Below are positions 2,226 to 64,000 of a stretch of DNA of 64,000 bases, one piece after another. Under the pieces are notes generated by a model that was not told the DNA's origin, searched no databases, and saw only the letters and a program-made list of their open reading frames with translations. Source of the DNA: Zygnema circumcarinatum SAG 698-1b (taxonomy: Eukaryota > Plantae > Zygnematophyceae); NCBI GenBank assembly GCA_037447605.1, contig CM074804.1, forward strand, positions 8,409,909-8,473,908, given 5' to 3'. The translations under genes and the position numbers were made by a program. The first letter of the stretch is position 1; each line of letters begins with the position of its first letter.

Positions 2226-3869
2226 GTCCTTCATAAAGTTGGAGCGGAAAGGGCGGCCGCAGCAGTCATCACTCTCGACACGCCCGGAGCCAACTACCGG
2301 ACTGTGTGGGCTTTGAGGCAAAACTTTCCGCACGTCAAAACAATCGTTTGTTCGAACGCACGATATCGACCACGGAGTTAACTTGGAGAAGGCGGGAGCG
2401 ATAGCGGTGAGCTGGGGGAGGCGAGGGAGAGGGGGGGGGGGGGGGGGGGGGGGGGNNNNNNNNNNAGAGAGGGAGGGAGGGAGGAAGAAAGGGGATAGAA
2501 AGTGGTAGGGAGGGAAGGAGGACAAGCGGTAGAGGAGAAGGTAGAGGAGGGAGGGAGGGAGGTAGGAAGAGAGGAGATGGCGGGAGGGATGGAGGGAGGG
2601 GAGGGAGGACGAGAGGGGCGGAGGAAGGGAAGGGAGGGCGGAAGGACGGAGAGGGGAGGGAGGGAGGGAACAAGAGATGCGCGAGCAAGAGAGGAGAATT
2701 GAGAGGGGAGGAGTGAGGGGGTGAGGTAGAGAGGTGAGCAGGGAATTAGTAAACGACATGACAAGGGAGACATGCTGGGAGAGTATGTTGGGCCTTCTTG
2801 ACTACTGAATTGAAACCCATCGTGTTGGTGTGACAGGTGGTCCCGGAGACTTTGGAGCCGAACTTACAACTGGCAGCGGCTGTGCTCGCGCAGGTCTGTT
2901 CCGACTCAATTATAGCTATCGTTTCCTGGCAATCCTTTCCATTTTTTTTTTTTTTTTTCCATTTTTTTCCTTTCCTTTTCTTTTCCTTTTTTTCATTTTT
3001 TTTTACTTTCTTTTCTACGGTTCCTTGAGGGTTTCAGGGTCCAGAAAAAGAAACTGGCGAGGCGAAAGTTGCGAAGACTAGATTGACTAGCTCTTTTTGG
3101 TTGTGACGTGACAGGTGAAGCTACCAGCACAGGTGATAGCAGCGGCCATTGATGAGTTCAGGATTCGACATCTCTCAGAGCTAACGGAGGTAATTTGCTG
3201 TTGTCGTGCGGAATGCCTCCAACACTTCCTGCTCTCTCTTCCCCTGTCCTCTTGTCCTCCACTCGACCCACCTCTCTCCTCCCCCTCTCCTCTGTCGCAT
3301 TCCCTCGCCATCTCTATTCATCCTTTTTTTCCTCTCCCCTCCTGTCGCACTTTTCCTTCCTCTCTCCTCCCCTCTCTCCTCCCTCGTCTTCCTACAACTC
3401 TCCCTTTTCGTTTACTCCCGGCCCGCCTCCCCCCCCCCCCACCCCCCACCTTCGCCACCTTCCCCCTCCCCCTTTCTTTCCTCTCCCCTTCCCCCTCTCC
3501 CTTGTAGCCTTTCCTCTCTCTTTCTCTCTCGTCCAGTTTCCGATCCACTCCCCTCCTCACCTTCCCTCTCCTCCTCGCACTTCCCTCTCTCCGCTTTCTC
3601 TCGTCACCAATCCAGGGTGGCATTTTCTTACTACGTTGATCCTTAGCCTCCTGCAGCTTTCCGCCATCAGTGGCTCCTCTCTCGGTTACGGCTTCTCCCG
3701 CCTCCTCACACAGAAAAAGGAAGGGGCGGCGGCACCCCAAAGTTCAAAGGCCAAGGCTAGAGAGGAGAGTCGGTCTGAGGGCCACCTGAAAGCGCCTCCC
3801 TCTTCCTCTCCTCCCTCTGAACCGGAGACCTCGCCTTCTCTGTCACAGACCACAGATGCTTTACTGTAA
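2226..3869 (+). CDS. KEA2: K+/H+ efflux antiporter KEA1/2-type, last four exons (TrkA-N/KTN C-terminus); contains a frameshift
   Basis: Exons 2226-2406, 2837-2893, 3115-3189, 3657-3869 with GT-AG ends encode VLHKVGAERAAAAVITLDTPGANYRTVWAL, FVRTHDIDHGVNLEKAGA, VVPETLEPNLQLAAAVLAQ, IDEFRIRHLSELTE and SGSSLGYGFSR, matching the plant KEA1/KEA2 C-terminus. Four extra nt at about 2343-2346 break the frame. Confidence 0.9.
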
Positions 3870-5362
3870 CTGGTCAAACGTTTACATGCTCCTCCGTTAT
3901 AGCTTGCCTCGGCATCGTAGGCTCCGGACATGTAAAAAATAAAGGGTATTCCATGGCCGCAGAAGAAACAGTAATCAGTGGTAATGTTAATGAAAAGGGC
4001 ATGGCAAAAAATGAAGGCATTTTCTACGTTCCCACGAAAACAAACCGAGCTTGCTTAAGACTGAAGCCGGGTAGGGGAGAGGGCCCTCCAGCCACACCTT
4101 TGTACCATCTGCTGCGTTACATCACCTTTGTACGACAACTTTCAAACAAGGGTTCCACAGTTTCACGGCATTTAGACGATGTGTTTGTTATAAATGTCCT
4201 CTCGGTACGCTCTATCCTCGTTTTAAACGTTTCTACACTTTCATCTTAACAAAAATGTTTAGTTGAGATAATGAATGCACCATCCATATATATCCAATGA
4301 CTCAAAAGCAAAAATAGAAGCTCACAACGATAAGATGCGTGCACATCAATACGACGCGAGACACAATACCGCTTTATATCGCGTCAGTTCCAGAATCGCC
4401 CCTCCGCCAAGCTGCCCCCAAATCGAAGAATTTACATTAACGTGGCGCCTATTCATTGGTCACGGTACCACTGCTCTGTGTCTCTACCCTCGCCTCCGTG
4501 CGCTTACCGCGTCCCGCACACGTGCGCCTGCCATCGCTGGACGCCCCTCTGATTGGCTGCGCGCAACTTCGATCCTCGTCTTCGTGGCGCGTCTAGCGAC
4601 TGTAACGTCACGCCCCTGAGTTCGAGCACGTATTGATTTTTGCAGTCGGCCCGCAGGTGCGAGTTCTTCTGTGTGCGCCGCGTGGCGACGACTGTGGTCC
4701 CAGCGAGGCAAAATCTTCTTACGCGTCGGCCGTCGATGTCAATCGGATTATTACACACCGTCAGATCAGCCGTTAATAAAACACTGCTGATGTCAGCCGC
4801 CCGCTCGTCGTGGGACCACCGCTTAGCCGTGACGCCACGTGGAGTCCTCGCTAGACCTGCCGCCCCCTCTGCCAGGTGACACTTGTCGGCACCTGTGATA
4901 TGGTCGTCGCACTACAGTATACGGACGGCCCGGACCGCCCGTTGACCAAATTTGATATCTCGTGGCGTTCTTTTAGTCGTCCGATCTCTGACATTGCCGT
5001 TCGGGCCTGCACGCGCGCCCCCACCGACCAGGCGACCACAAAGCGCCGGCGCGCAGAATGAAAATGCCTGGTCATCGGCCAATCACAGGCCACCGTTGTA
5101 TCGGTGCGCTTTGGCGGTTCGGAATGCACACTGCCACGTGGCGCTTGGCCTCGCCAAAAACGCGGTCCCACCGGTCGAATGAATGCTTCACAGATCGGAC
5201 CGTTAGACAAACCAGTCGACTGGTTGGCAACCACTGGTTGCGGACCGAAACAACCATTCGACTGGTTGCCAACCAGTGGTATCCACTGGTTCCAAACCAG
5301 TCGACTGGTTGCCAACGAATGCCGCCGGATCGAAACAACCATTCGACTGGTTTGGAACCAGT

Positions 5363-22257: not shown

Positions 22258-25200
22258 GAGGGATGGGATGCAGGACCTTATGCCGCTCAGCGAGGATTGC
22301 ATGCCTCATCTTCCACTAATGTTCTCATTAACGGATGGAGTAGTGAGAGCAAGAAAGCAGACATGGGCGGTGCAGAACGGGGGCATGATTACAATTTTGG
22401 ACGAGGCCTGGAAGGTGGGAGTCCTCGTTTGAAGATACGAGCGAGGGCGGCTGAAGGAGACGGTGCTGGGTGTGGAGGAGAGACAGAGGTAGAGCCAGTC
22501 GAGAGAATGGTGGAGGAAAGGGACCAGCATTGCAGGCAAGTTTCGTGATTGGTTTTGATTTTTTTTTGGGTCACTTTCGTGAACTTGGCAGACAGATGAC
22601 AATTGTGGGAAATAGTAGGTTTGCTGGAAAAAAATGGCTTATCTTGGCTTGAGATTGAGTTCCTCTGCAAAAATTGGACGGTAAAAGCTGGTGTGCTTCT
22701 TGCCTTGATTGAAAGACTACTCTGAGGGAGCTAATTGCATGCTTCGATGTTTTCTGCAGCAAACGGCATCGAACAGCTAATGGGAAACAGGGTGATGAAG
22801 AGTTTGAAAGGGATGTCGCTTCTGTACATCCGTTGGCGGAGGATGCTCGAAGTGGCTTTGAGAAGGCAACCTCACGTACATTTTGGAACGATGACAGAGG
22901 CATGGATCGGTCAGATTTTGTAGATTTGGGAAGTCCAAAGAGTAGGTTTGAGAGATCGAAGGTGGTTCCGAGCAACATGATGCACCGTGTAAAGGTTAAA
23001 AAAGGTGGAGATAATGGTCGAGATGGGGCGCATGGGGAAGGCGAAGCTGCAAATGGCGATTTTGGTCAAAGCATGCTCGGGGAGGGCTCAACAAATCAGG
23101 AATTAGGGTTAGGTGGAATTCGGTTCGAGGATGACGATGCTCCTTATTGGGACTCTTGGATGGAGAAGCGAAACGAAGCATCGAATCCGACTATTCTGAG
23201 TGCTCCGAAGTCACATTCTGTATCTCCTGAGTTGGGGGTAGAACGCCTTCGAATTGGCGGCAATATCATGCCTGGCCAGACTGAGAATGTGCTGAGTGAG
23301 GCCGCTTCCGATTGTAATACTGTCCTTCGTCTGTTTTCAGAACGAGATAATTCTGAGACATTTATCCAACGAAACAAAATGTCTCCTGGGATATTTGGGA
23401 GATCAGAGGGAAGGACATCACAATCACTTTCATCAGTGCGGGAAGTGGAAGAATTGCCGAAACTTAATGGCGTTCTGGATCTCTCTTCTCCGACATCATT
23501 TAGCCTTTTTGGAAAAAGTGCAGATAGAACTCCGAATGCTTCTCAATTTCGGCCCACAAACAGATCCGCTGTCAGTGCTGCAAGGAATATTCGATCGAAC
23601 AGAGGATATTTGGCTGTTAACGGAGATCCTATCGAGGTGCCCAACAGAGTGGAGGAAAACAGGGACTCGTCCAATATTGCTGTTCGTCCTTGTGGTGAAG
23701 AAAATTGCTTACCTGATGTAGATTTTGCATCGTTGTTGCCTTTACAAAGGCCAAGGAACGCCCGACAAAGGAGGCGTTCTCAGGAGGAAGATGCATCTGG
23801 CAGTATGCATCTTGGGCTTAACAGTGACACGATCCGAGAGGGAAATACGCTGGCAAAGGATAAGCCATCGTCTGATACTCATTCTGTACCTGCTCGAGAT
23901 TCCGACCAGAGAAGTGTAAGTAACTGGAGGAGCAGGCTGGTGGAGTTGATTTCCCTTACAGATGAAGAAGCAGATAACGCAGAACATAGTATTCATGCGA
24001 ATGGTACTCCATCTGCTATGGCCCAGCCTCCAAATTCTTCACTACGACAGGATTTATTGTGGTCTGATCAAGCGAATGAAGCTGTCCGGCCTAGCAGTAT
24101 GATGGACCGTGATTTACGCTCTGCAGGGCAAGAACAGACAGTGGCAGAGGCAGATTCTTTGCCAGATAACATACGGCTTCTGGGTTCTTCATTGTTTGAT
24201 GACCTTTGGTTTGATCCAGTACGAGAAACGGGTCAGCCAGGGAGCAGACCAGTGAACCGTGTCTCACAACCAGGGGGTAAAGAAAGGGCATCTGTGTCAG
24301 AAATTGATGGAGGCCAAGGTCCAACATCAAACAGCGTGCTGCCGAGTCTACGACCATCGCTGTTCCGAAATTCGCGGGGTCTTGATCAGCCGAATGGAGC
24401 GTTGAGGAGGCTGAGGAATCCTGACGTGTCAATGGAGGGAGGGGAAAATTCTGAAGAGAGAGTGGGAGAGAGGCAAGAAAATGCACAGTCGAATATTTTG
24501 CCATCAACCAACATGCAGCCTCCACTCCTGACATCATTTCAAGAGTTGTGGAGATCTGATGAATCAAATGAAGGTAGTCGTCCGAGAAGATTTATGGATT
24601 TTATCGCGCCAAGGAGGGAAAGGGACGAGGCAGGGAGGGCAAGAGAGGAGGCAGATTTCCAACGAGGTCGACAGGCAGAATCTTCTTTTACGCAGCTTCC
24701 CGACTCGTTTTGGTCCGGATATGATTGGGGCTCTGAGCCGGAGAACGAAGCCAATGATCGGAGAAATAGGTTAATGAATCTTTTCTCCCGAGTAATGCCG
24801 AATGACGAATCTGCTGATGCAAGAGATGGTGCTCTAGCAGACACTGCCCCATCAGCTGACTCGGGGGCTTCAAATTCTAGGTTTTTTCGAGATGTGCGTG
24901 ACTCCAATCCTGCGAATGGGGCTGGAAACTCGAGGAGCAGCTTAGTGGATTTCATTTCACGGAGAATGGCCAGGGACGAGGCAGCTGCTGCTGTGCAGGA
25001 AACACATGGAAATGTGGATGCTGTGGAAGTAGGCTCAAGTGCTGGTGGAGCAGGGATATGGGGAATTGGAGGGGAACAGCCAAACAGAGCTGGATTCCTC
25101 CGGCAATGCCCCATCAGTTTAGATAATGGTCTGGAGAGGGAGGGAGCAGGGGTAACAAGCCAAAGGAGGACAAATGGATGGATTAGGTTTGGGGGAGGAA

Positions 25201-28200
25201 GAGTGGCTTCAGGTCAGGAGTCAGAAGAAGCAAGGGAGAGGGAGATAGGAAGGCCAGTTAGGTCGTCAGCGTCTGGGCTTTCACTTGCGAGGGATACATG
25301 GATGTTGGGCTCTAATTCTGATAACCATGTGAACAGGGGCAATGCGGAAACAGCCTCTCCTAAAGAATTATTGACGGAAATGAGCAAGCAAGAAGGGCGG
25401 AGGAGGCAGAGAGCAACATCTACATTGAGGGGTTATCGTAGAGCTCGGCCCCTTTCAGATGTACAGGTGGTTGAGTTGGGAGATGACGAAGATGAAGGTC
25501 GGATGAACGTCGAGGAATTGGGGAATGCAACCCTTTCTTCTGTCGCTGGAGTTATTGAAGAGCCCCCTGCTGATCGAGATACTCAGCTTGCGTCAGATGA
25601 GAAGCTTGCATTGGAATTACAGGCAGCTTTGGATGCGGAGGACCAAAGATTGGCAGAGCAGGTGGGCTTCGTTGAGGATTGGGATGGACAAAAGGGAGGA
25701 GTTTTAGACATCTTGTTGTGTCGTTGTTTTCACGAATTTCTGATGTTAGACTGTCATAAAGTCTCATTTCAATTACGCTTGCTCATTTGCATTTTATGAA
25801 GGGTGCCTTTGTCTTCAAGTTGTGCAACGAGGCACAAGTTAACGTTGAGACATGTTTTCGATGAGGGCTACTTTGGTTTTTCGATGTATGTAAGTGGGTC
25901 TATATTGTCATTAGTATATGGTTGAACGTGAAACGTGAAAAAGGCACATTCTATGTTGATGGTGCTGCAGGTAGATGGAGAATCTATGCAGGCTGATGCT
26001 GAGTTGGCCCGTACGTTACAAGTAGAAGAAAATGCAAGGGCTTTCAGAAGACGAGGACATGTACAAAGCAGAGAAGGCTCCCATAGAGCTGGAACGGGCG
26101 AGCAAGAGTGGGATACTTACCTTTCATTAACATCGCAGGTACATTATTCTTCCCCCTCCCTAGATTTTCACATTATTCGGTTTGCGATTTTTTTTTGCTA
26201 TCGGTCGATAACGACTAAGTCTTTCTATTGCGTTGAATTTGCTTATTGAGATCACGAGTGAGGCATCTCGTTTTTCTCTCTTTGCCTTGTCCATTTCTGA
26301 CTTTTGTTTGACATATGATACCTTGCAATTTCCTACAGTCCCCATCCCGGCTATTTCATGCACCCCGAGAGAATCATAGTGATTCTTCCGTATTTCATCG
26401 CCGTCTTCCTTCGCACATTTCAAGTGATAATGTTCAGTCAAGGAATGATGGAACCCTTCGAGCCTTTCGTGATATAGAAATTTCATCTGCAGTCGAGGAG
26501 GAAGCAGGAGCACGCAGTCCGGGACAGAGTGTCGGTGTGTTAGAGGATAGAGCAGAGAGAGTCTTCGGAGATGGAAGGAGAGTTGGAGCCCTATGGCCGG
26601 AAAGAGCTGGAATTGAAATAGCAGAAACGAATGATACACTCCCTCTGGGATTTAGGGGCAGAGCAGAACGATTCTTGAATCCGGGGTTCATGACAACGAG
26701 AGACTTACGAGGGAGAGAAGCTTTCTTTGGGGTGCGAGGAGATGGAAATGGTGAGGAAGGGGAGGGTGGCGGCGGAACAGCGGAGGATGAAGGGCGGGAG
26801 AGGGACGCAACTAATGGAGGTGGAGGCATTCGAGAGAGGTTGAATGGAGCGAGGGGTGCTTCTGAGCGACTTAGACGAAACGAAAGGGCGAGGGAGAGGA
26901 GGGAGAGGCGAATGTGGATGGGCGGAGTGGGCCCAGATCTTGATGACACATTGTTTGGAAGGAGGAGAATGAGTTTTTCCCAAACAATGTCTTCCGATCA
27001 GGTGAGAGAGAGAAAGATTGTCAAGAATTCAGTACTGTTCAATGGCTCTGTCGGTTGCATTTGGATGTAGCAAGGAAGTTGAAGTTCCAATTGATGCTGT
27101 CTGAACATTTGAATTGTGTTTAAGATTTGGGTGTGTGTGAGAGAGAAGAGATGTGCGAGCAAGTGCGAGAGAGGAGTGGCAAAGAGTGAAGGAGTAGATA
27201 GATGACTTGGGATGTTTCGATTAGGTAAAAGGTGTTTAGCATATTTTGTTACTGATGGGCGTTGTGCGATGGGTTTTGTATTCAGAGAGTAGAATTTCTT
27301 GCGAGCTTGGAAGCTGCACTCAGCCGTGAACTCCCTCTGGCTTTACGTCTTGCAACTGTGGATCGCGATTTTAATGAGTGAGTGAAAAGTTTATTTTTGT
27401 AGGCAGGACATTTCATCTTTACGTTAGCGCACGAGGACAATCCATGCAGCAAAGCTTTTCCGTACTTGACTGTGGATTGCTGCATGCTGTGTTGTACAAA
27501 AAGGAGCTACAAAAGCTTGTTGAGTTCCCTGGTTAAGTGAGGCATTGTTTGGTCAGCCATTTTTTTTGCCTTAGTTAAAGCCATGTCTGTTGCGCATGTC
27601 TGGTCATTACCTGAAGGCTTAATCTGAATGGATGCTCTTTGCATGGCGTTTGCAGGGATGACTATGAAATGCTGCTCCGCTTGGATGAGATCGGATTGGA
27701 GCCATCGCGGAGGGGGGCTTCTTCTGCAAACATTAATCAACTTCCAACAACAACTGTAACGGTAACGATACGGGGCTGATATTCCTTCGAGAGATAAACT
27801 TTGATCTTTAGTTTTTCGTCAGAAAACTGGAACTACAATACACTCACTATGCAGGAGCCTTGTGTGTTATTCTGTATATAACGATATTCTTCTTTCTTTC
27901 GTTTAGCTCTAGCGTTGATATTGGCTTTCATGGTAGGATCTGACAATGCCTTTCTCTCCTCCTTTGTCTTCAGGATATCGATGTGTTTGAAGAGCCATGT
28001 TCCATTTGCTTGGAAGAGCCAAAAGTGGGTGAAGTGCTGCGGCGTCTGCCTTGTGTTCACATCTTTCACAGACAGGTGCCAATTCAGTGACCCCCTCTCC
28101 TCCCTCTCTCCCTCTCTTGCTCTCGCCCCTCTCTCTTTCTTACACAGCTGTTATGTGTCAATAGCACAGGTGTTTGTTTTCCTTTGACATGTATGATAAA

Positions 28201-45817: not shown

Positions 45818-48360
45818 GGAGAGAAGGGGGGAGGGCCCTTTCACGCACTAGCCGATAACCAAAGCAGTCAGCCAGTTCAGTCAGTTAATTTCCTGCATCT
45901 CGAAAGCCGGAGCTTGCTCTGTCCTTTAGATGAAATTTTGGGTACTTAGGACCGTGCCCTTGTCCGGTTCTGCATCACTTTGCGGCTCAACATCACATAC
46001 CGTGAGTGATGCAGAGCACGTCCTCCTCCATGTGTTTGTCGGCTAGTGCATCGAATGTCCTTGAAAATCGAACATGGGCTGCTTCGTCAGACTCCGGATA
46101 TGCAGGCAACTGCAAAAACGTAAACTCCCAAAGTAGAAAAATTCCCAATTTCCCAAATGCGTATTAGGATTTTTCTCTCCTTTTTTTCTATCTAAGATAA
46201 CAAGCAGAACTTGAGAGAACAAGGAAAGCCACGATTTCATACCTTTGTCATTGTGGGAACTGCTTCTTTATCGAGCAGAGAGGGAGGGAGTAAGCTCTCA
46301 AGCTCTGCCTGCGGGAGGAGCCAAACCTCTCCCTCCACTCCCTTCCCTTTGAGAGAGACCGAGTCCCGCATAGCCCTCCGATTCATCATTTCTCCAAGCC
46401 CATAATCTATGTATACCTGCAAAAGAAAAATTCAAATGCATCTTTTATACCAACCAAAAACTCATTCAATTTCAGTCCCGAGAAGGCAGTTTTAGTTTTT
46501 AGGGTAACAATTCAAAAAGAACTCATAGCTAAATACCTTAATCTGTGTTGGGTCCACCTTCAGTTCCGTCCTACTGCCCTCCGTTCCCTGCAACGGAACT
46601 GCCGTCAAAGCACGCAACACTTCCGCCGCAGTTTGAACGCATCGAAGGAACGGCGAAACCACGAGTCGAGAAATTTCCCACGCTTCGGACCTCACCCTTC
46701 TCCCCACTTCAAAAGCAATTTCTTTTCCCCTTTCCGTAATAGGAGGGTCCCAGGGCCTCTCTGAGGAAGCCACCCACAAAGGGTCGACATCATCCAGCCT
46801 CTCACTATGTCGCATTACTATGAGGGACTGGCGTCTAACAGAGGTAGAGGTAGAGGTAGAGGTAGAGGTAGGGAAGGGGCTCTCTAGACCGCTCATACTC
46901 GGGCGGGGGCTGCCGAGAGTGGCGGCGGTAGAGTCGAAACTGTTGGTGCGTGTGAGGAAGCCACTCTCTCCCGTCTCTCTCTCGCGGGAGAAGGCGCCGG
47001 AAGTCATAGAGTCAAAGTAGGTAGGGGAGCTGGGGACAGAGGGAGGGGGCTCGTCAAGCATGGGCTCGGCTCCGGAGTAGGCTTCTGACCTGAAGGAGGG
47101 AGGGAGGGAGGGAGGGAGGGAGGGAGAGTGGATGTATGAGTGGGGGCTTGTGTGTGAGAGCGAGGGGAATTGTTTTTCCTTTGGGGAAGGGGGGGAGAGG
47201 GGGGAAGAGCGGCAAAGGAGATGTTGCATTGGAGGGACCGCAGGGGGCGAGAGTGAAAGAGAGAGAGAGGGAGGAGAAAGGGAAGGAAGGAGAGGAAAGG
47301 GAGGAGCGGGAAGAGAGAGCAAAGGAGAGAGGAGAGAAGGGGGGAGGAGAGGTAAGGGAAAGAGAGAGACAAAGACCCAGGGGGCAGAGCGAGAGAATAA
47401 CACATAGGATCCTCCGAAACTTGGCAACAAAAACCAGAAAAAACCAAAGAACCAGCAAAAACTTAAAAAAGTATCTGAAACCTATAATTCTTGAAACTGA
47501 AAGTTCTCCAAAACGCTAAAAATTGAAAAGATCAGAAAAGGGAGAGAGCGGGGTCGGCTCCTGTTCCATTTGTAACCCTAAAAAACCCAAACAGAACATA
47601 ATTCAAAACGACAAAAATCTTGAAGATCATAGAAACCCTAGAACTGCTGCAAACCTAAAATTCGAACAAAAGTGACCTGGCAGTAAACTTAATAATATCA
47701 AATGCAAAGGAACGGAAGGGACTTTTCTTTTCCAAAAAACATAGAAAAGAAACCATTTAATATCATAATGTTTGGTTGATTGTGTAAAAAAAGAGTTAGT
47801 GTGGACAGTCATTGAAGATAGACACTCCCTAACGTATGATCCAATCAGGGCTCTCCACGTCAGATACAGTGCTTACGTGGCAAGCCTTGATTGGCGGATA
47901 TCTTCGCAAGCAACCCTCAATGGAACCCTACATCCTAAGTGACTTTCTATGCAGAATCAGGTTTCGTATTTCCTTTCAAGAAAAGAAAAGAAAAAAAAAT
48001 TGATGTAATGATCACGGCATTAAGGAGCGGGGGGTTTCTCTCTCTCCCACTCTGTCTCTCTACCCCCCCCCTCTCTCTCTCCCTCTTTCTCCCCCTGTCT
48101 CTCTCTCTCTCTTCCCCCCCCCCTCTCTCCACATAACATTTGTCCCGCTCCCCCTTTCTTTCCCTCCTTTTCCTCCTTCCTCCCACCCTCTCCTCCTCGC
48201 CGATCCCTCCCCTAACTGTCCTAAGTTCCCAGAAAACCTATAATTCCAAAATTTCCCGAGGAGCACTACGAAGGGCTGAACCCTAAACTCTGAGGCCCCA
48301 CCTGAAAATCCCTTCAGGTGCGCGCTCGATGGGGGAGGCGTATTGGGGAGCGTCCTCCAT
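45321..48360 (-). CDS. Histidine phosphatase / phosphoglycerate mutase-like protein
   Basis: Exons 47089-46537 (IVMRHSER, WDPPIT, SPFLRCVQTA), 46416-46243 (IDYGLGE), 46109-46001 (LCITHG), 45514-45321 (VYEVNYC). A tentative first exon 48360-48302 splices in phase; the alternative start is ATG 47061. Confidence 0.88.
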
Positions 48361-50274: not shown

Positions 50275-51190
50275 CAATGGGAGGAGGAATAGGATGAGAG
50301 TCCAACATTGAAGAGAGCGAGGCAAGAGCTCCCGCAACTGAGCATCTCCTCCTGCCATAGCCCGAGCCCCTTTCAACGCCTTTGTGCTCGGGCCCTGCGT
50401 ATCTTCCAGCTAGCTCCCAATCTACCACACAACAAAGGGTACGTTTTTTCTTTAAGGTTTGTGTGGTCCTTGAAAAAAATGTATTTTTTATTATAAGGAG
50501 AAAGACTGAACGACTTTTCACTGACATGAGTTAACGTGTTGTGTGTTTTTTTTCGAAATTTACCCACCCAGCACTGCTATAGCTGCTATAACCCTTAAAG
50601 CTGCTGTAGCACCTACAACTCCTACAACTTCTTCAGCTGCGTCAATTGTTGGCACACCTAAAAAAGAAGTCCAAGAGAAGGCTACAGAACGTCATCCATA
50701 ACAAGACCCATCACAGGTGTAGCAAAACGCTATAGCCACCGGAGGCACTATGCGCACCACAAAGATCTTTGTACAGTTTGTCCGTATTGATTGTCAATTT
50801 GGTCTGAGATTGAACTGTTAGTGTTAGTGTATTATAGTTAAGCATTACATAGTACACACTAACTTGGTTATGGTACTCAGTCGTGAAAAACTACCTAGTA
50901 TGAGTCGCGATGACGTCAGCAACTTAAGTTCAGAGGTGCGCGTGTAGCGCGCGCGGGCGGAGTTTGGATGAACGGCCACGATTGATCGCGGCGCTAACTT
51001 GGAGACGCGCGGAGCTGATTGGTCGTGGGGCTGACGCGAAGGCGCGTGGTACGGACGCGCGAAGATGATTGGACGCGGCGCGGGCGCGAGGACGCGGAGT
51101 GCGCGTCGGTGACGCGAAACGACGAAAGGATGTCGGCGACGAATCGCGCAGCGCCACGTGGGCCACTTACTGAGTGGGCCNNNNNNNNNN

Positions 51191-54100
51191 CACTGCACGG
51201 CCGCAGAAGTTGACTCCAGAGGAAATGGAGAAAATGCAGCGGGAGAACAAGTGTTTCCGCTGCCGCAAGGAGGGGCATAAGGCCCGGGATTGCCCTCTCA
51301 ACACCAAGGACAAGAAGGGCAAGGGGCCGGAAAACCCCAACCCACCAGCAGCTTAGGGGTCGTTGCTGGTGGACATGCTAGGCTAGGGGGAGGGAATGGG
51401 GCTGCCATCAAGGATAAGAGGCTATTGTTTCTTAGAACCTCGGACATTCTTAACTTGGTGGGCAGGACTTTGGGAGTGCAAGATCTTTTTGTGTTTGATG
51501 TACTCCCTTCTTCCATTTCTCTTTCCCCTGCCACTGTAGTGACTCCTCCTGGGTTTATGGATGTGCTGATGCATGGTCAATGGACTGTGTTTATCCTCAA
51601 TGTCATGGGCGATGATGTTCTCATGCAATGTGCCATGGATGCTTTGCATGTCATGGGAAACACTTCCCATGTCCTTGGGCTGCATGTGCTGGTTCCTCAG
51701 CACATGGCAGTTCGCACCTTTCCCAACGCCACTTGGCGGTTGGTGAAACAGTTGAGGAAAGGGCACAAATTGGTGCAGACGATGGAAGGATCAGGGTTCG
51801 CCTCATTCAATCACCTTACACCTCTGGTGTGGAGGTCACTCGGCCTCAACCCTCGCATAGTGTGCGTCTGTGTTCCATGCTTGCCGATCATGCCATGACC
51901 TTCACCGGGTTCAGCGTCTGTACCACCCCGCAAGTGATCCTGTGATCCTGCGGGGCAGATGCTAACTTTGTTAGTTCTCCCTGCGGTTACCCCACAAACT
52001 TGGGTTGACCCACAGATCCCCATTCACAAAGTGTCTTCGGGGATGGGCGCAAGAGGCCAGATCTGTCGTAGCGTCACCACTCGGGATCAAGCTGCGGATG
52101 CCGTGCGGGCAAGTGAAGTGTCTGCTGACACAGATTGGCCTTGTAGTCAAATCTTATTTCAGGAGTACTTGGTTAACATAGTCAGAGCCCGATTAGACTT
52201 TTCCATCCACAGCTGTGTCTACACGGTCAAATAGGCGCATAAGCACTGCACCCTGGCAAACCCACATCCACTGCTATCACGCAGGTTGATACTCCTTATC
52301 TCTGCTCGGCTATGCAATTGGCCAAAGCAGTTAAGGAGGGTTGCACCTTGTTCATGGTGCATGTCATGACAGCCACTGAGGATGTTCATGACGAAGATCA
52401 GGAGTGGCAGATCACATCTACTGACGTGCTCTCCACTGTTCCCTCCCAGTTCCAACCTCTGTTGGATGAATTCAGGGATGTCTTCCTGATGACCTTGCAA
52501 GGGTTGCCCCATGGAGAAGGGTGGGGCACACGATCCGTCTTGAGGCCTGAGCGGAGGCCCCCCTGGCGGCCGATCTGTCGGTAGTCCGGAAGAAAGCGAG
52601 CTGCGACAGCAGCGTTGGCGCTTTGCGTGAAAAGGATACGATAAGAAACCCAGTCAGACCCCCCTGGGGCGCCCATCTTGTTCGTTGGGAAGAAAGATGG
52701 CTCGTTGAGGATGTGCAAAATTTGGAGCAAAAATAATGAAAAGATAAATGAGCATAATTGTCAATGCATCGACAAGATCACCGTAAAGATTGGTTTACTT
52801 ACACGTATGGATAATATGTGGTAACATTCACACAAAGTGTCACATCACTTGATCTTGCTCAGGTGTTCCATCAAATCCACGTCACGGAAGCTAATGTGCA
52901 AAGCTGCGTTCCAGACGCCGATGGTCATTTCCCAATGTAAGGTGTTGCCTTTTAGAATGACTGATGCTCCGGCAACTTCACTCTCATGAACGGAGTATCC
53001 ATCGCATGGGCGAGTTTGTTTTGGTTTACCTCGATGATATCCTTGTCTTCAGTAAGACGGAGGAGGCACATCTTGAACACGTTCGGAAAGTGTTTGAGAC
53101 CCTGAGGAAACACCGTTATCCGAGGGGGAATGTCAGTTTCATGCAGCGGAGTTGCTTTATCTTGACATCTCTGAATAATCAGCCTTCGGCTGGTGCTACA
53201 ACGCAGTAGAAACTTCCAGCGCCGCAGGCTAGGCTACCACGTTCTGGGGTCCCTACTGGGCTTTGCAAAATCTTTTTCGTAAGTTAGTCCAAGGGTTTAG
53301 TAAATTGGTTACTCCCTTGACTAATTTGACACGTTCCGGTGTCCCCTTTGCATGGACCCCTGAATGTCAGGAAGCATTCAAGGGCGTGCGCCATGCCCTT
53401 GTTACCGCGCCCACTCTCCGTTTGGCGGACCCGTCCAAGCCTTATGAAGTGGTTTGTGATGCTTCGGGATTCACCTTGGGGTGCCGTCTTGTTTAGGATG
53501 GCCAGCCTTTGGGTGTGAAGCTCGCCAAAATGAATCCCGCTAACGCAACTATTCTTGCAGACAGACGGGACTGCTTCCAGTGGTCACGCCCTGAGTCTCG
53601 CGGGTGCTGTTGGAGGACGGAGAGCGGTCACGCTGATCAGCTAACAGGCAGGCTGACGTTCCTCTCAACCCAACGGCCCTGTCTAGGGCGGCGGCACGGC
53701 TCATCTCAAGCTCCTCCCAAAGGTTTGGCTGCCGGTGGGTTCTCAGCCCGGAAGGCGCTGGCGGCCCATTCCCATGGAGGGCCTCAGCATCTTGCCTGGA
53801 TGGTGGCTCATCGAACTCAAGTGTTGGTGAAGAGCAGGATCTGGCGGAGGTGAGGGGCCAGCGCCCAAGTGTGTTTCCAATATGCTTGTCATGGATCCCT
53901 ACCAATGACGGTCAACCTTCTTGTCTCTCTGATCTGAGCAGATGATTGGGAGGGGTATATGGTAATATTTTTTGTTGTTGGATAGCCAAGGTAATGGCTG
54001 TGGGCAAAGATGGTGTAAGACGGATTCTGGTACCACGCCAGCAAGTGGTCATGCGGCTGGACTGTGGCGGCTCATCTGAGTGAGCTACATGGTGCTTGAT

Positions 54101-56216: not shown

Positions 56217-59200
56217 ATCGGACTACAAGGGGTGGAGGTGGCGGCTGGTCCCCTTGCTCGTGGGCAAGGGGCTGTTAGGGTACGTTGACGACACCATCAA
56301 GGCACCGGTGCTACCAGAGGGAGCCACGGCGGAGCAGCAGTCTGAGTTCGACGCGGCGCTCACCAGATGGAAGGCCAAGGACAACAAGGCCCTTACCGGA
56401 TGCGTCATGAGTGTGAGGGGGAAGTCCCTCACCTCTATGCTGTATGATCTCAAGACCTCACATGCGATGTGGAGGTGCTTAGAATGTATGATGTAAGGAT
56501 AATGTGGCGATTGTCCAGCCTTTACACCGCGGCTAGGGAAAATGAAGTTGTCCTCAGTTGTGTAACTTAGCGAATATATGGTCAGGTTTTATACTCTGAT
56601 GGAAAGGTTCATAGCCCTTCAGAAACCATTAGAGAGTGATCATAAGATTAGCCAGTTTACGGGGGACTGCCTGCCACGTTTTGATGCTTGGCAGTTTGCG
56701 GCTCTTAGAGCGATCTTAGCAACAAATTCGAAAAGGACCTTGAGCAAGTGAAGCGAAGGATCAAAAGGAGGGAGGACTTCAGTTCAAGGCGTTGGGAGCC
56801 TTAGGGAGAAGGTGCTGCATGGCGCACTCCGCGTCGAACCGAGAAGGCTGGCGGTGAAGGCAGGAACCGAGGGAGAGGAAGCGTCTAGCGAGGTGTGCTT
56901 TACCGCGTGTAACCAAAAGCGGCCCTTGCACCGGCGGAGACTGTTCTGGTACAATGGGACCCAGATGAGGGAGGAAGCTTAGATCATCCATCGAAGGATA
57001 AGAGAAGGGGTTGAGGGACTTCAAGTGCAAGAAGCGTGGCTACAAGAGTGCAGATTGCGAGTGAGGTGGAGACCAACACTCATGGTGGCCGAACATTTTG
57101 ACTTTGTTGGGAAGATCGAGGTTCAAGATGCGAAGCGGCCATGGCCTTTGTCGACTGCGGCGGCTTCCACACACATGTGTGGCGACAAGCAAATGTTCTC
57201 AGCACGTTGGACCGCGTTGGAGAGGACCGCGTTCGTTCACTCAGCTGCGGAGGGTAGCCCGATCCGCGAGGAGGTGAAGTCAAGATGATCCTGGGAGGCG
57301 GCTCCGTGATCACGAAGAAAAGGCAAAGAGAAAGCGCCTTTGCATGTTGGCGTCCTTCACACGGCTGAAGCGAGAACTATTATACATTTAGCCAAGGGTG
57401 TGTAGAAGGGGTATGAGGTCGCGTTAGGGGGAGAAGTCTTGTGTAGCTACTCACCTCGTGACGGGAAAGCAGCTGTTTAAGGGGTTTGAGAAAGAAGGGT
57501 TGTATTACCTTCACTATAGGAGAGAGAAGGCAGCGAGAAGTCATGGCGTGGCTGAAGATCACGGTGAGTCTCTGGCAGCCCAGGAGCTTGTCACCTCCAA
57601 CCATAGGGGCTTTGCAGCAACTGGCAGAAAAGGGGCTGGTCCGTGGGTTGGATCTTGACGTATTTGAGAAGGAGATCGGATTTTGCAAAGACTGTGTGGA
57701 GGGGAAGGCGCATAGGAAGCAGTTTGGCATGAGGGTGGAGAGAAGGGGCGTTCAGCGCCAAAGGGAGATGTTGGGTTAGTCCATATACCGACCTCTGCTG
57801 ACCCGTGACACCAGAGCAACGGCGGGAGGGAGCGTTACTTCATCACCTTCTCGGCTGACTTTTAGGAAGATGCAGGTAGAAGATTCTCAGAACAAGTCTG
57901 AGGCATTGGGGACGCCCCCGAGGGTGGCAGATTCAGATGGAGAGGCGGACACAAGTTGGGAGCTCTTCGTTCGTTCAGATAGCAGGCGAGTTCAAGTCCG
58001 GGGAGTTGGTGAATACCTGAAGTCGAGGCATAAGGCATGAATTCTCGCTCCCTATTCCCCTCAAAGTAATGGAGCTGCTGAGAGAGTGAACAGGACGTTG
58101 GGGGACATGGCGCGAACCATGTTGATTGATTCCCCGTTTCAAGCATCCTTTTGGGGAGAGGCAGTGATGACTGCCGCTTACCTTAGGAACAGATGTCCAT
58201 CCCTCTGTCCCTCAAGGATTCGAGGTTCGAGGGAGGTGTGGAGTGGGGAGAAACACGGTCACTTTCACGAGGCATTGGGCCGGTGTTGGTCGGCGGTTCA
58301 GCGAAGCAGAAAGAAGTTGACCGAAAGCGTAGAAGGGTATATTCTCGGCTGCGGCGGCGGTCGCACCTACGGTGTGGAACCCTGCGATTGAATGAAGTTC
58401 AGAGTTGAGGGATATCACGGTGGATATGAGGAAGCGGTGAAAGCGACTAGGTGAGAGCCGTTGAGGAGACGGGTTGGGGAGGTGTGTGCAGGGATGTGGA
58501 GATAGTGGAGGGCGCCGGCGCTTCCCGGTCCCGGCCTTGGGAGGGAGATCAGCCGCCCGGTGGCGGAAGAGGCGAGCGAGGCGGCACCAGCGTTGGCGTG
58601 ATCGGGAGAGCGAACCGGAAGCGCCGCATCGCGGGGAGAACGCGGAAGCTCGGTGGAGGCGGCTCCGGTACACAAGCATCTGGTCCGGGGCGAGGGAGAA
58701 CTTCGGGGCAGAGACCGTTCCATTGCACCGGCGAGTGGTGAGCACGGAAGAGGGAGAGATGTTGCCGAATATGCCTCCAAGGTTTGTCCCGGCATCTTCT
58801 TCAGCAGAGTGGGAGGAGAGTGCAAGAGTCGGAGGAGCAGCGGCGATAGGGAAGCACGATCGTTTCCAGGCCCTCACAAAACTCAACCTGGTGCAGAGGT
58901 GCCTTGATTTCCGTGATCTACATGAGGTGTTGCTCATTGCTTCATGATTACCGAGCCGCAAACGTTTATGGAGGCTCATGATGGGGTCGATGGAGATAAA
59001 TGGAGAGCGGCGATAGACAGCGAATGGGATAGTCTGATGAGGGGAGTAGCTTGCGTGGCGGAAGCTGCAGAAAGGACGAGCCATTGGATGCAGGAAGTGG
59101 GTGTTCAAGGTGGCCGGCCGGGCCGGGGCGTCGGCCTTTACAAAGCGGCGGCTGGTGGCAAGGAGCCGGCCAGAAATGCGAGGAGTTGACTATCACGGAG

Positions 59201-60621
59201 ACGTGCATGATGGTGAAGTTCAACTCCCTCAGAGCCTTGATCTCGATTGCAGCAGCGGAGGGGATGCATGTCCATCAGTTGGACATCAAGACCGCGTTTT
59301 TGTACGGAGATCTTACCGAGGAGATCTACATGGAGCAGCCCGAAGGAAAGGTGGCTCCCGGTCAAGAGCATCTCGTTTGTCGTCTAGTGAAGAGCCTGTA
59401 CGGACTGAAACAGGCGCCCAGGATATGGTACGAGAAGATAGATGAACTACCAGGGAGAGCGGATTTCTTGGCGATTTGAGGCCAGGATCATTAGTCTACC
59501 GACAGAGAGAGGGAGGATCTCATATGCGTTGGGATCACGTTGAAAGCGACACTCATTATGGTGAGGTCTCACCAAACGGAAGGGAATCAATGATCTGGGC
59601 GGCTCTTGCAAGCTAACTTCAAGATGTCGGATCTAGGGGAGGCGCAGTATCTGTTAGGGATTCAGCTGAAGATGGGGCAGGATGGCAGCCTCTTCCTGGG
59701 TCAGAAGAAGTACGCGATGGATGTACTTGCGAGATTTCACATGGAGGATTGCAGACCGTGCACCAGCCCGATGGAGATCGGGGCGCGACTTTCGAAGGAT
59801 ATGTCGCCCGCAACGGATGCGGAGGTACAGCGGATATGCGGAGTGCGTCTGAATCGCTGTCGGAATCTCATGTACGATGATTACGAGTACTGGCGGCGGA
59901 CTTAGCCGTGAGCTCCGCAAGGAATGGGTTCATGGAGAATCGGGACGAACATTGGGAAGTTACGTGAAGAAGATCTTGGTATGTCGCGAGGAACAGCAGA
60001 TGCGGCCTGGCGAGATACGAGAGGGCGAATGGGTGATTGGCACGATTCAGATTACTTGGGAGGTGGTGGCGTGAACCGCGTCAAGATCGACTTTCCGAGG
60101 ATTACTACGAATGGAAGCGGAGCTATCTGCGTGGAGCTCAAGCTTGAGGTGGGTGGCGTTGTCAAGCACCGAGGGCGAGTACATGGGGGCTTGCCATGCA
60201 GCAAAGGAGGGAGTGTGGTTTCAACATTTCTTCGAGGAGTGTAAGAGGCCGCAACTGCCCGTGGCTCTGTTCACGGATAATCAGTCGTCCATTGCCTTGG
60301 TGGAAAATCCAGTGTTCCACAAGAGGACCAAGCACATCAGAGTGCTTGATATCACTATGTGCGAGTTGGTGGAGGAAAGGGATGATGATAGATTTGTATG
60401 TGAAGTGCGTTGGAACAAGAACGGGCTGCGGATATGTTGGCGAAGGTGTTGGCGGGGAGACCATACTAGTGAATAGCAGGCTTATTGGGCTGGGGCCCAT
60501 GAGAGACTGAGTCCCAAGAGGGGGATTGTTAGTGTTAGTGTATTATAGTTAAGCATTACATAGTACACACTAACTTGGTTATGGTACTCAGTCGTGAAAA
60601 ACTACCTAGTAGCGGTAGCGA

Positions 60622-62611
60622 TGTAGCCCGGCCTTCGGCCACCCGAGGCGCTACTTGCGAGGACCTCACGTGCGATTGCCGTCATTACGCCTTTGTCGGT
60701 CGGTCGAGAACTTGACTGCGAGAAGACCCGACATACTAGGACGCTGGCGTGCGGACGCGCGCCCAGCCTTCCGGCGGCGCCTTGGCGGGTATTGATGGCT
60801 GTAGCATATCTTGCGCGCGTCGTATCTTGGCAGCGTCGTGGCATATCGCGGCGGCGGCGGTTCCTGTAGCGGCAGAAAAACTGGGCGGCGGCCGACATAT
60901 ATTCCGCGTGGCGATCGCCCGCAGGCTACACCAACCAGCGGCGTCTGCGCCAGTGGTAGGCCACCTTTCGGTCCCTCGCCGCTGGTAGAGGTTACGGCGG
61001 GGAAAGCGTATAGGCGAATACGCGGCATTCAACGGAAGCCCGGCACTACTCTCTCTCTCTCTCTACCCCTCACGCCTCCTTGCTGACCCGCCAGACCGGT
61101 ACCTGGACTCCCATTACATTGGTATCAGAGCCATTTTTCTTGATCCTGCGACTGCTCACCGCTCCCACCATGGTCACCACGCGCGCACGGGGAGCTGGGG
61201 AGCCGGCACCGTCGGATACACCGCCGATTCCCCTTCCTCCTCCACCTCNNNNNNNNNNCGTGGGGGCGGGAGGGGGCCAAAGCGTCCTGGGGATGCACCA
61301 GCTCAGCCCTTGGCGGCAAAAGTTCCCAAGTTGACGTCCCAAGAAGCGGACAGGCTCAAGAAGGAGGGCCGATGTTACCGTTGCCGACAGGCGGGACATC
61401 TGGCTCGTGACTGTCCTAAGGGCCAGCAAGCTCCTGGCCCGGAAAACGGACCTCCACCTGCAGTCTAGAGGTTGTTGCAGGTGGTAGTGGTTGGGGCGGG
61501 AGATTGGTTGTTGGAGCTGCCAGGCGTAGGGATTTTGTTGTACCCTTTTCCAGTGATTTAGTAAATATTATAGGCCGGCAGCCCCTTGAGTCAGATATTT
61601 TTGTTTTGCAGTGCCCGGAATATCTGAATGACTCGTTGTTCTCCCTCTCCACCCGAATGACCTCTCTTGAGTTTTCTGTTGCGCAATGGAATGAACCTGC
61701 TGAAGTCTGGATTCTGAACCCTACCGGCACTCCCGATCTGTTTGAGAGTGTCCTTGATGCCTTTCGGCGGGGCCGCACTACACTGTTGGTGTCGGCTGTG
61801 CATATCTTACTTCCGCAGCACGTCCCCATCACTTGTTTCGGCCACGCCCATTGGAGGGTGGTCCGGCTTTGGCGTAGGGGTCACCCGTTGGTGTGCTGGG
61901 ACGCCTCCGGCCACGGCGCTTCTTGCACGCTTCCGTTCCCGCTCATTTGGCGCACGGCGCGTCCTGATGCGTTGGTTGTCCTCAGGTCCATGTTTCAGCG
62001 ATCCCACCGTGCCATGACCTTTTATGGGGTTGTGGAAGGTCGACCTGTTATCGCCTTGTTTGATTCCGGCGCTGACGACAATTTCCTGAACTCTTTGTTT
62101 GTTAAGATGACCTCCCTTGTCCTTTCAGACCGCTCCGATACAGTCACGTTCGGCGATGGTCGTAAAGGGCAGATCCTCGGTTGTGTGACTACCCGATTGC
62201 GAATTCAATCTTTTTCCGGGCAGATTCGGTGCTTGGTCACAATTCTGACTCCTGGCATTGACTTGATTTTAGGCAGTTATTGGTTGCAGTCAGTCCGGGC
62301 CACGATGGATTTTGCAGTTCCGACCTGCGTGGTTCGCAGTGGCACTCGGCGGGTCACCTTACTACCGGGTATGCCCACGGTTGTCCCCCCCCTCCATCCC
62401 GATGCGGCGCACTTGTGCTCCGCCATGCAGGTGGCGAAAGCCGTGAAGACGGGTTGTGTCCTTTTTTATGTGCACCTCGTCGATGAGATCGAGTCTGTCT
62501 ATGACGGCGACCAGGAATGGTTACCTACTGCCTCAGAGTCGTTACCACCCGTGCCACTGGCGATCCAATCTTTGCTTACCGAATTTCAGGACATTTTCCC
62601 AGAGGACCTCC
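60622..62611 (+). mobile_element. Ty3/gypsy family B, 5' part (LTR 60622-61118, PBS-iMet 61120-61132, gag, extra domain, protease)
   Basis: TGTA...TACA LTR followed by TGGTATCAGAGCC. Gag ATG at 61170 (MVTTRAR). CYRCRQAGHLARDC zinc knuckle, gag stop at 61466-61468. Protease ALFDSGADDNF at ~62060 and DLILG..WL. Confidence 0.92.
61531..61965 (+). CDS. Extra Pol N-terminal domain, degenerate Dam-type adenine MTase-like (family B)
   Basis: Intact frame continuous with the protease: DIFV..FSVAQW..VWILNPT..VLDAF..SAVHILLPQH..WRVVRLWRRGHPLV..FPLIW. Confidence 0.6.
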
Positions 62612-62621
62612 NNNNNNNNNN

Positions 62622-64000
62622 GGCGGGACCCTCAGCTCCTGCCAAACTGGCAGGAAAGAACAAGCGGAAGCAGCCGGAAGTGGCTGCCCGCCCACCCACT
62701 GCACGGCCGCAGAAGTTGACTCCAGAGGAAATGGAGAAGATGCAGCGGGAGAACAAGTGTTTCCGCTGCCGCAAGGAGGGGCACAAGGCCCGTGATTGCC
62801 CTCTGAACACCAAGGACAAGAAGGGCAAGGGGCCGGAAAACCCCAACCCACCAGCAGCTTAGGGGTCGTTGCTGGTGGACATGCTAGGCTAGGGGGAGGG
62901 AATGGGGCTGCCATCAGGGATAAAAGACTCTTGTTTCTTAGAACCCTGGACATTCTTAACTTGGTGGACAGGCCTTTGGGAGTGCAAGATCTCTTTGTGT
63001 TTGATGTACTCCCTTCTTCCATTTCTCTTTCCCCTGCCACTGTAGTGACTCCTTCTGGGTTTATGGATGTCGTGATGAATGGTGATTGGCATGTCTTTAT
63101 CCTCAATGTCATGGGCAATGATGTTCTCATGCAATGTGCCATGGATGCTTTGCATGTCATGGGAAACACCTCCCATGTCCTTGGGCTGCATGTGCTGGTT
63201 CCTCAGCACATGGCAGTTCGCACCTTTCCCAACGCCACTTGGCGGTTGGTGAAACAGTTGAGGAAAGGGCACATGTTGGTGCAAGAGATGGAAGGATCCA
63301 CCAGCTTGCTGGTTGGCNNNNNNNNNNTCAGCTCCTGCCAAACTGGCAGGAAAGAACAAGCGGAAGCAGCCGGAAGTGGCTGCCCGCCCACCCACTGCAC
63401 GGCCGCAGAAGTTGACTCCAGAGGAAATGGAGAAGATGCAGCGGGAGAACAAGTGTTTCCGCTGCCGCAAGGAGGGGCACAAGGCCCGTGATTGCCCTCT
63501 GAACACCAAGGACAAGAAGGGCAAGGGGCCGGAAAACCCCAACCCACCAGCAGCTTAGGGGTCGTTGCTGGTGGACATGCTAGGCTAGGGGGAGGGAATG
63601 GGGCTGCCATCAGGGATAAAAGACTCTTGTTTCTTAGAACCCTGGACATTCTTAACTTGGTGGACAGGCCTTTGGGAGTGCAAGATCTCTTTGTGTTTGA
63701 TGTACTCCCTTCTTCCATTTCTCTTTCCCCTGCCACTGTAGTGACTCCTTCTGGGTTTATGGATGTCGTGATGAATGGTGATTGGCATGTCTTTATCCTC
63801 AATGTCATGGGCAATGATGTTCTCATGCAATGTGCCATGGATGCTTTGCATGTCATGGGAAACACCTCCCATGTCCTTGGGCTGCATGTGCTGGTTCCTC
63901 AGCACATGGCAGTTCGCACCTTTCCCAACGCCACTTGGCGGTTGGTGAAACAGTTGAGGAAAGGGCACATGTTGGTGCAAGAGATGGAAGGATCCACCAG
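62622..64000 (+). mobile_element. Two apparently identical family-A gag-end / extra-domain fragments separated by an N-gap
   Basis: 62622-63317 and 63328-64000 repeat each other and closely match 51191-51790. Confidence 0.85.

Follow-up and report, generated by a model that had tools for sequence, protein, structure and literature searches.

What does a Ty3/gypsy-type retrotransposon of Zygnema circumcarinatum encode between the end of its gag gene and its protease? The question is raised by the end of a 64,000-nucleotide stretch of DNA (the window; contig CM074804.1, positions 8,409,909 to 8,473,908), which is pieced together from short contigs, with gaps of 10 N between them at 61249, 62612 and 63318. 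The interval from the first of these gaps to the second contains the 5' portion of a gypsy-type element, which we call family B, and since both gaps cut this copy, the window contains no complete element. On the forward strand, to which all coordinates of families B and A refer, three-frame translation and a coordinate check placed the 3' end of gag at 61373-61468, with a CCHC zinc knuckle at 61373-61414 and the stop codon at 61466-61468. The Pol frame opens at 61420 and is therefore in the -1 frame relative to gag, with an overlap of 49 nucleotides (61420-61468). The open reading frame 61504-62862 carries a domain of about 140 residues (61531-61965), delimited by the open reading frames, an alignment of families A and B and AlphaFold2 models, and then the retropepsin, the aspartic protease (62029-62328; Pfam RVP_2 over residues 176-275, E 1.7e-4; DSGA at 62062-62073). 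The conserved blocks of the domain are D-I-F-V (61594-61605), V-W-I-L-N-P-T-G (61705-61728), H-I-L-L-P-Q-H (61801-61821), R-R-G-H-P-L-V (61873-61893) and P-L-I-W-R (61939-61953). An earlier reading, made from the letters alone (the sequence-only reading), had claimed an extra domain between the gag stop and the protease, in the frame of the protease, and this was borne out. Of the parts expected of a chromovirus, family B shows the zinc knuckle and the retropepsin; reverse transcriptase, integrase and chromodomain would fall past the gap at 62612.

A homologous insert had also been claimed for a second gypsy-type family, A, and it is indeed present. The Pol-frame open reading frame 51281-51898 contains the domain with its core at 51413-51850, the coordinates as now defined, and is degenerate downstream; the blocks V-F-I-L-N-V-M-G and H-V-L-V-P-Q-H are found at 51587-51610 and 51683-51703. 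The layout, which spans 51174-51898, is that of family B, with the gag stop at 51356 and the Pol frame opening at 51281. The B and A domains are homologous over about 138 residues with 34% identity (E 9e-18), and tblastn matches lie at 51437-51838, 62910-63281 and 63606-63977. The further family A copy that had been noticed near 62920-63290 is one of two identical ones, both cut: copy 2 (62796-63317), which is preceded by a gag end at 62622-62862 and interrupted by the gap at 63318, and copy 3 (63492-64000), which runs into the end of the window. The fragments that hold them, 62622-63317 and 63328-64000, are 100% identical over 504 nucleotides (62796-63299 and 63492-63995) with the 10-N gap between them; either the sequence was duplicated in tandem or a repeat has produced an artefact of scaffolding.

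The protein had been described as conserved in spite of strongly diverged DNA, and the substitution data agree. Between families B and A the proportion of synonymous differences (pS) is 0.71, which means that synonymous sites are saturated, while the proportion of non-synonymous differences (pN) is 0.48 and not saturated. The proposed comparison of copies by the ratio of non-synonymous to synonymous substitution rates (dN/dS) gave 0.44-0.52 for two family A copies with 95% identical DNA, a value that comes from merely 10 synonymous and 15-17 non-synonymous changes. The saturated pS beside a pN of 0.48, together with the low dN/dS, indicates that the domain has been maintained by selection in active lineages. 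The conserved pre-protease domain in two diverged gypsy-type families is therefore confirmed.

Outside the window the domain is rare. No Pfam family matched the domain of B, of A or of the outside relative described here at E<=10, and PHROGs held nothing relevant to it. An exhaustive profile search of 1.84 billion protein cluster representatives returned a single relative, P0001 (E 7.8e-5), from positions 3412-4488 of the European Nucleotide Archive (ENA) metagenome contig L001; no more were found in word-index searches with B and P0001, in two metagenome scans or in a viral-contig scan. The contig encodes gag with a zinc knuckle, the domain, the retropepsin and then, after an internal deletion, a chromodomain, so that the order gag-domain-protease recurs in another sample. 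P0001 itself is an internally deleted chromovirus gene in which reverse transcriptase, RNase H and integrase are missing and in which gag and Pol do not overlap. Across the three lineages (B, A and P0001), which are 26-34% identical, 18 columns are invariant.

The overlaps of gag and Pol contain candidate signals for the change of frame. The nonamer CCGGAAAAC, read as Pro-Glu-Asn in the gag frame, occurs at 61439-61447 in the family B overlap and at 51327-51335, 62833-62841 and 63529-63537 in family A, and is thus common to the B overlap and every A overlap despite DNA that is otherwise strongly diverged. In family A there is also a heptamer, A-AAC-CCC, that begins at 51332. Both are candidate -1 frameshift sites. 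The domain would be made solely within Gag-Pol, by ribosomes that slip into the -1 frame as gag ends, and the adjoining retropepsin would presumably cut it free.

What kind of domain is it? A first AlphaFold2 model, made from 4 sequences, reached a predicted local distance difference test (pLDDT) score of 48; a second, with P0001 added to the alignment, reached 61.5 with a predicted template modelling (pTM) score of 0.63 and a core at about 70-79. Both models order the elements alike. The D-I-F-V strand and a variable stretch come first, then a strand that closes on an invariant Asn and a long helix; a strand with L-L-P at its end leads to a short helix, and four successive strands and a last helix complete the chain. 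The parts of low confidence in the second model are the N-terminal 20 or so residues and residues 30-35. When the better model was searched against BFVD with Foldseek, phage DNA N-6-adenine-methyltransferases ranked 1 and 3 (E 5.9e-3 and 1.4e-2; probability 0.99; 18% identity), and with the poorer model the same phage enzymes ranked 3 and 10; a second-look list of structural matches agreed. Most of the top PDB matches are amino-methyltransferases, aligned over 107-117 residues. The poorer model also leaned towards methyltransferases, both in Foldseek against PDB and in the ESM Atlas shape search, where KsgA gave a template modelling (TM) score of 0.53-0.54 and PCIF1 0.48. The sequence-only reading had named the Dam family from motifs alone and had proposed a check by structure prediction; that the best viral structural match is this very family lends moderate support to a Dam-type fold. 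In this check the phage adenine methyltransferase took the first viral rank, with middling scores and a model of moderate confidence, and the assignment of the domain to the methyltransferase type is a prediction at that level.

If the domain is a methyltransferase, it is probably not a working one. Motif IV, (D/N)-P-P-(Y/F/W), is absent from all three lineages, which have N-P-T-G (B), N-V-M-G (A) and N-A-Q-G (P0001) in its place; solely the Asn and the Gly are invariant there. The loop that would bind S-adenosylmethionine (SAM) after the first strand is absent as well, with D-I-F-V-L-Q in B, D-L-F-V-F-D in A and T-T-I-V-T-T in P0001, against D-A-A-A in phage Dam, and the approximately 25 residues that follow the first-strand position are variable and poorly modelled. 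No copy with an intact NPP[FY] was found among B, A and P0001, and Pfam detected no intact Dam among all 132 open frames of at least 110 codons in the window.

By eye, five blocks of family B match the Dam of phage 933W in order and with similar spacing: a Trp followed by V-W-x-x-N-P, a strand ending in L-L-P, an aromatic residue eight positions after L-L-P, a G-H where Dam has G-R, and a final L-I-W-R. The sequence comparisons covered phage Dam proteins only, in a narrow alignment and in a broad one that was widened with twelve diverse phage Dam genes and comprised 15 proteins with identities as low as 25%; the proper bridge would be the DAM domains of eukaryotic transposons. The positive control, Dam of phage 933W, matched PF05869 at E 1.2e-64. 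None of the results for the domain supports a Dam relationship. Neither B nor A nor P0001 matched the Pfam Dam model at E<=10, and BLASTP against phage Dam gave E>2. The profile comparison suggested by the sequence-only reading was negative, the hhalign probability being below 0.2% in local and global modes; profile-profile alignment under four gap settings gave z values of 0.07-0.95 against 150 column shuffles, and HMMER scores of the domain against phage Dam, in both directions, stayed within the shuffle range. PHROGs offered no link of the domain to Dam, and tblastn against 50,697 phage records found no Dam. On the structural side, all scores lie in the middling range of the tools, and the alignment behind the AlphaFold2 model is very shallow. 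As no test supported the alignment made by eye, the motif resemblance is to be taken as a lead and not as evidence. The claim of a Dam-like domain with an eroded motif IV is partly supported: the models are methyltransferase-like and the NPP-aromatic motif is absent, but every sequence test against Dam was negative.

With these points on both sides, we consider the chances about even that the domain descends from a small Dam-type adenine methyltransferase and has diverged strongly and lost its catalysis, a descent that is suggested by the predicted fold. Domains of this type are carried by DIRS elements and by some green-algal long terminal repeat (LTR) retrotransposons (10.64898/2026.05.21.726589). 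In a group of chromovirus-type Ty3/gypsy elements Pol would thus begin with an independently folding unit of some 140 residues, and the predicted order of its secondary structure fits a methyltransferase core: a strand, a strand with the invariant Asn at its end, a long helix, the L-x-P strand and a beta-hairpin that starts from the invariant Gly-His. Since the N-P-P-aromatic motif and the small-residue SAM loop are gone, methyl transfer was probably lost and the domain retained for a non-catalytic job. The model places three invariant polar residues, Asn72, His106 and His127 (counting from 61504), where the fourth and fifth strands end and at the turn of the hairpin; as methyltransferases grip the target base along this edge of the sheet, the three residues may line a surviving binding pocket. 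Our best guess at the job is that this pocket binds nucleic acid or a base, or possibly a peptide. The fuller proposal is that purifying selection has preserved a dead transposon Dam descendant where Pol begins, in several chromovirus lineages of a host that is probably a streptophyte alga, and that this descendant passed to a non-catalytic use, base or nucleic-acid binding or service as a protease pro-domain, after loss of an epigenetic one; we advance it tentatively, as falling somewhat short of an even chance. The claim of a pseudo-enzyme within a chromovirus Pol holds as far as conservation and the absence of motif IV and of the SAM loop are concerned; no sequence test connected it with Dam.

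An alternative is a lineage-specific domain with no relation to Dam, a generic alpha/beta sandwich that this chromovirus group evolved or captured and that may be a protease pro-domain or bind nucleic acid in the manner of Alba; in that case a shared beta-alpha-beta arrangement would be all that lies behind the resemblance to methyltransferases. Against it, the Dam family named from motifs is the top viral structural match, most of the top PDB matches are amino-methyltransferases over more than 100 residues of the domain, and the invariant Asn falls exactly at the end of the motif IV strand. We regard such an unrelated domain as a serious possibility but would not expect it to be the answer. 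That there is no domain at all, and that the region is a fast-evolving unstructured linker, such as separates frameshift site and protease in many gypsy elements, would account for the want of family matches of any kind and for the low confidence of the model at its N-terminus and at residues 30-35. A linker would hardly keep 18 invariant columns in three lineages so far apart, with pN well under the saturated pS, or be modelled with a regular alpha/beta core at the pLDDT and pTM values given above, and we think this explanation very improbable.

The ESM Atlas features of family B pointed elsewhere, to a truncated and dead cysteine protease of the Ulp1/SENP type (C48), as in MULE and Ginger DNA transposons: the first match scored 0.94 with 177 shared features, and Peptidase_C48 was named in 25 of the 30 matches. 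Family B also has His-Trp ... Trp-Asp-Ala-Ser at 61849-61908 (residues 116-135), which resembles the His and Asp strands of C48 and probably explains the language-model match. Ulp1 domains, like OTU domains, are documented in DNA transposons (PMC2836005). However, neither A nor P0001 keeps the look-alike His and Asp, no Cys or Gln stands at the proper spacing before the start of the retropepsin, and P0001 gave no usable ESM Atlas match. PF02902 was without a match at E<=10, phmmer of B against all PDB sequences found no Ulp1 or SENP, and no list of structural matches contained a C48 chain. The Ulp1/C48 candidate was rejected on these grounds, its catalytic look-alikes being confined to B, and we hold it to be highly unlikely. 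The domain resembles the Ulp1/C48 domains of MULE and Ginger in being an accessory domain on a mobile element with C48-like language-model features in B, and differs from them in having neither a catalytic triad nor a fold match and in that the signal is missing from A and P0001.

An extra enzyme-fold domain beside the protease in a frameshifted frame has a parallel in the dUTPase that betaretroviruses and some lentiviruses carry in the pro frame, although the fold differs and the dUTPase is catalytically active. The domain is comparable in size to the phage Dam of PF05869 (about 175 residues; for example L0094 of phage 933W), by eye its blocks have a similar order and spacing, and its best viral structural matches are of that family; unlike phage Dam, it shows no statistically detectable sequence similarity and has neither the N-P-P-Tyr motif nor the D-A-A-A SAM loop. 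With the methyltransferase of DIRS1 it would share a retroelement-borne Dam-like domain, a loose motif IV and a strand ending in Pro. In DIRS1 motif IV is (A/I/L)(F/N/Y)PP, mostly A-F-P-P, followed by a strand ending P-x-W (PMC3266345 supplement); the DIRS1 domain, compared here by its published motifs, lies at the C-terminus of RT-RNase H (reverse transcriptase-RNase H), and its spacing is 26-27 residues against 34 here. The closest counterparts were described in a preprint of May 2026 (10.64898/2026.05.21.726589), in which DAM domains were reported from DIRS elements and from four or more LTR lineages, among them a chromovirus clade of Chlorophyta; these domains keep Asn-Pro-Pro and showed no activity in E. 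coli, and DAM-LTRs were reported absent from Streptophyta. The Zygnema elements share with the chlorophyte clade a Ty3/gypsy chromovirus backbone in the green lineage and an extra small Pol domain with a methyltransferase-like predicted fold. They differ in that the DAM-LTRs pass the Pfam Dam model at E<=1e-5 and retain Asn-Pro-Pro with its flanking aromatics, whereas here there was no Dam match even at E<=10. At the threshold of that screen, Pfam E<=1e-5, the Zygnema domain would go uncounted. LTR retrotransposons that carry an adenine methyltransferase have thus already been described (10.64898/2026.05.21.726589); what would be new, if the Dam link holds, is a diverged variant without the NPP-aromatic motif.

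The remainder of the window contains other mobile elements and host sequences. A copia-type element at 3-1875 on the forward strand has GAG-pre-integrase, integrase core and retroviral SH3-like domains, and a degenerate copia-like stretch at about 58041-60476, on the same strand, adjoins family B across the gap at 61249. The open frame 22713-25796 (forward strand, 1028 codons), rich in Ser, Arg, Asp and Glu and disordered-looking, has no Pfam match and probably represents a single large host-gene exon. Host-gene fragments among the open frames include a histidine phosphatase at 46495-47481 on the reverse strand, a nucleotide-sugar transporter, an ATP-binding cassette (ABC) transporter and an SPX domain. 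Rfam detected no RNA family within the window.

Whatever its origin, the domain is one that current annotation pipelines miss. If it is not derived from Dam, it would be a near-orphan folded domain of Pol, with one relative in 1.84 billion protein representatives. If it is, the newly described DAM-carrying LTR elements would extend to forms that are invisible to ordinary domain searches, and a dead Dam would then be present in a host group, the streptophyte algae, from which DAM-LTRs have been reported absent and in which genomic N6-methyladenine (6mA) is scarce. A Dam origin would also mean that a fold can outlive its own chemistry, which would bear on how transposons adapt as their hosts gain or lose 6mA.
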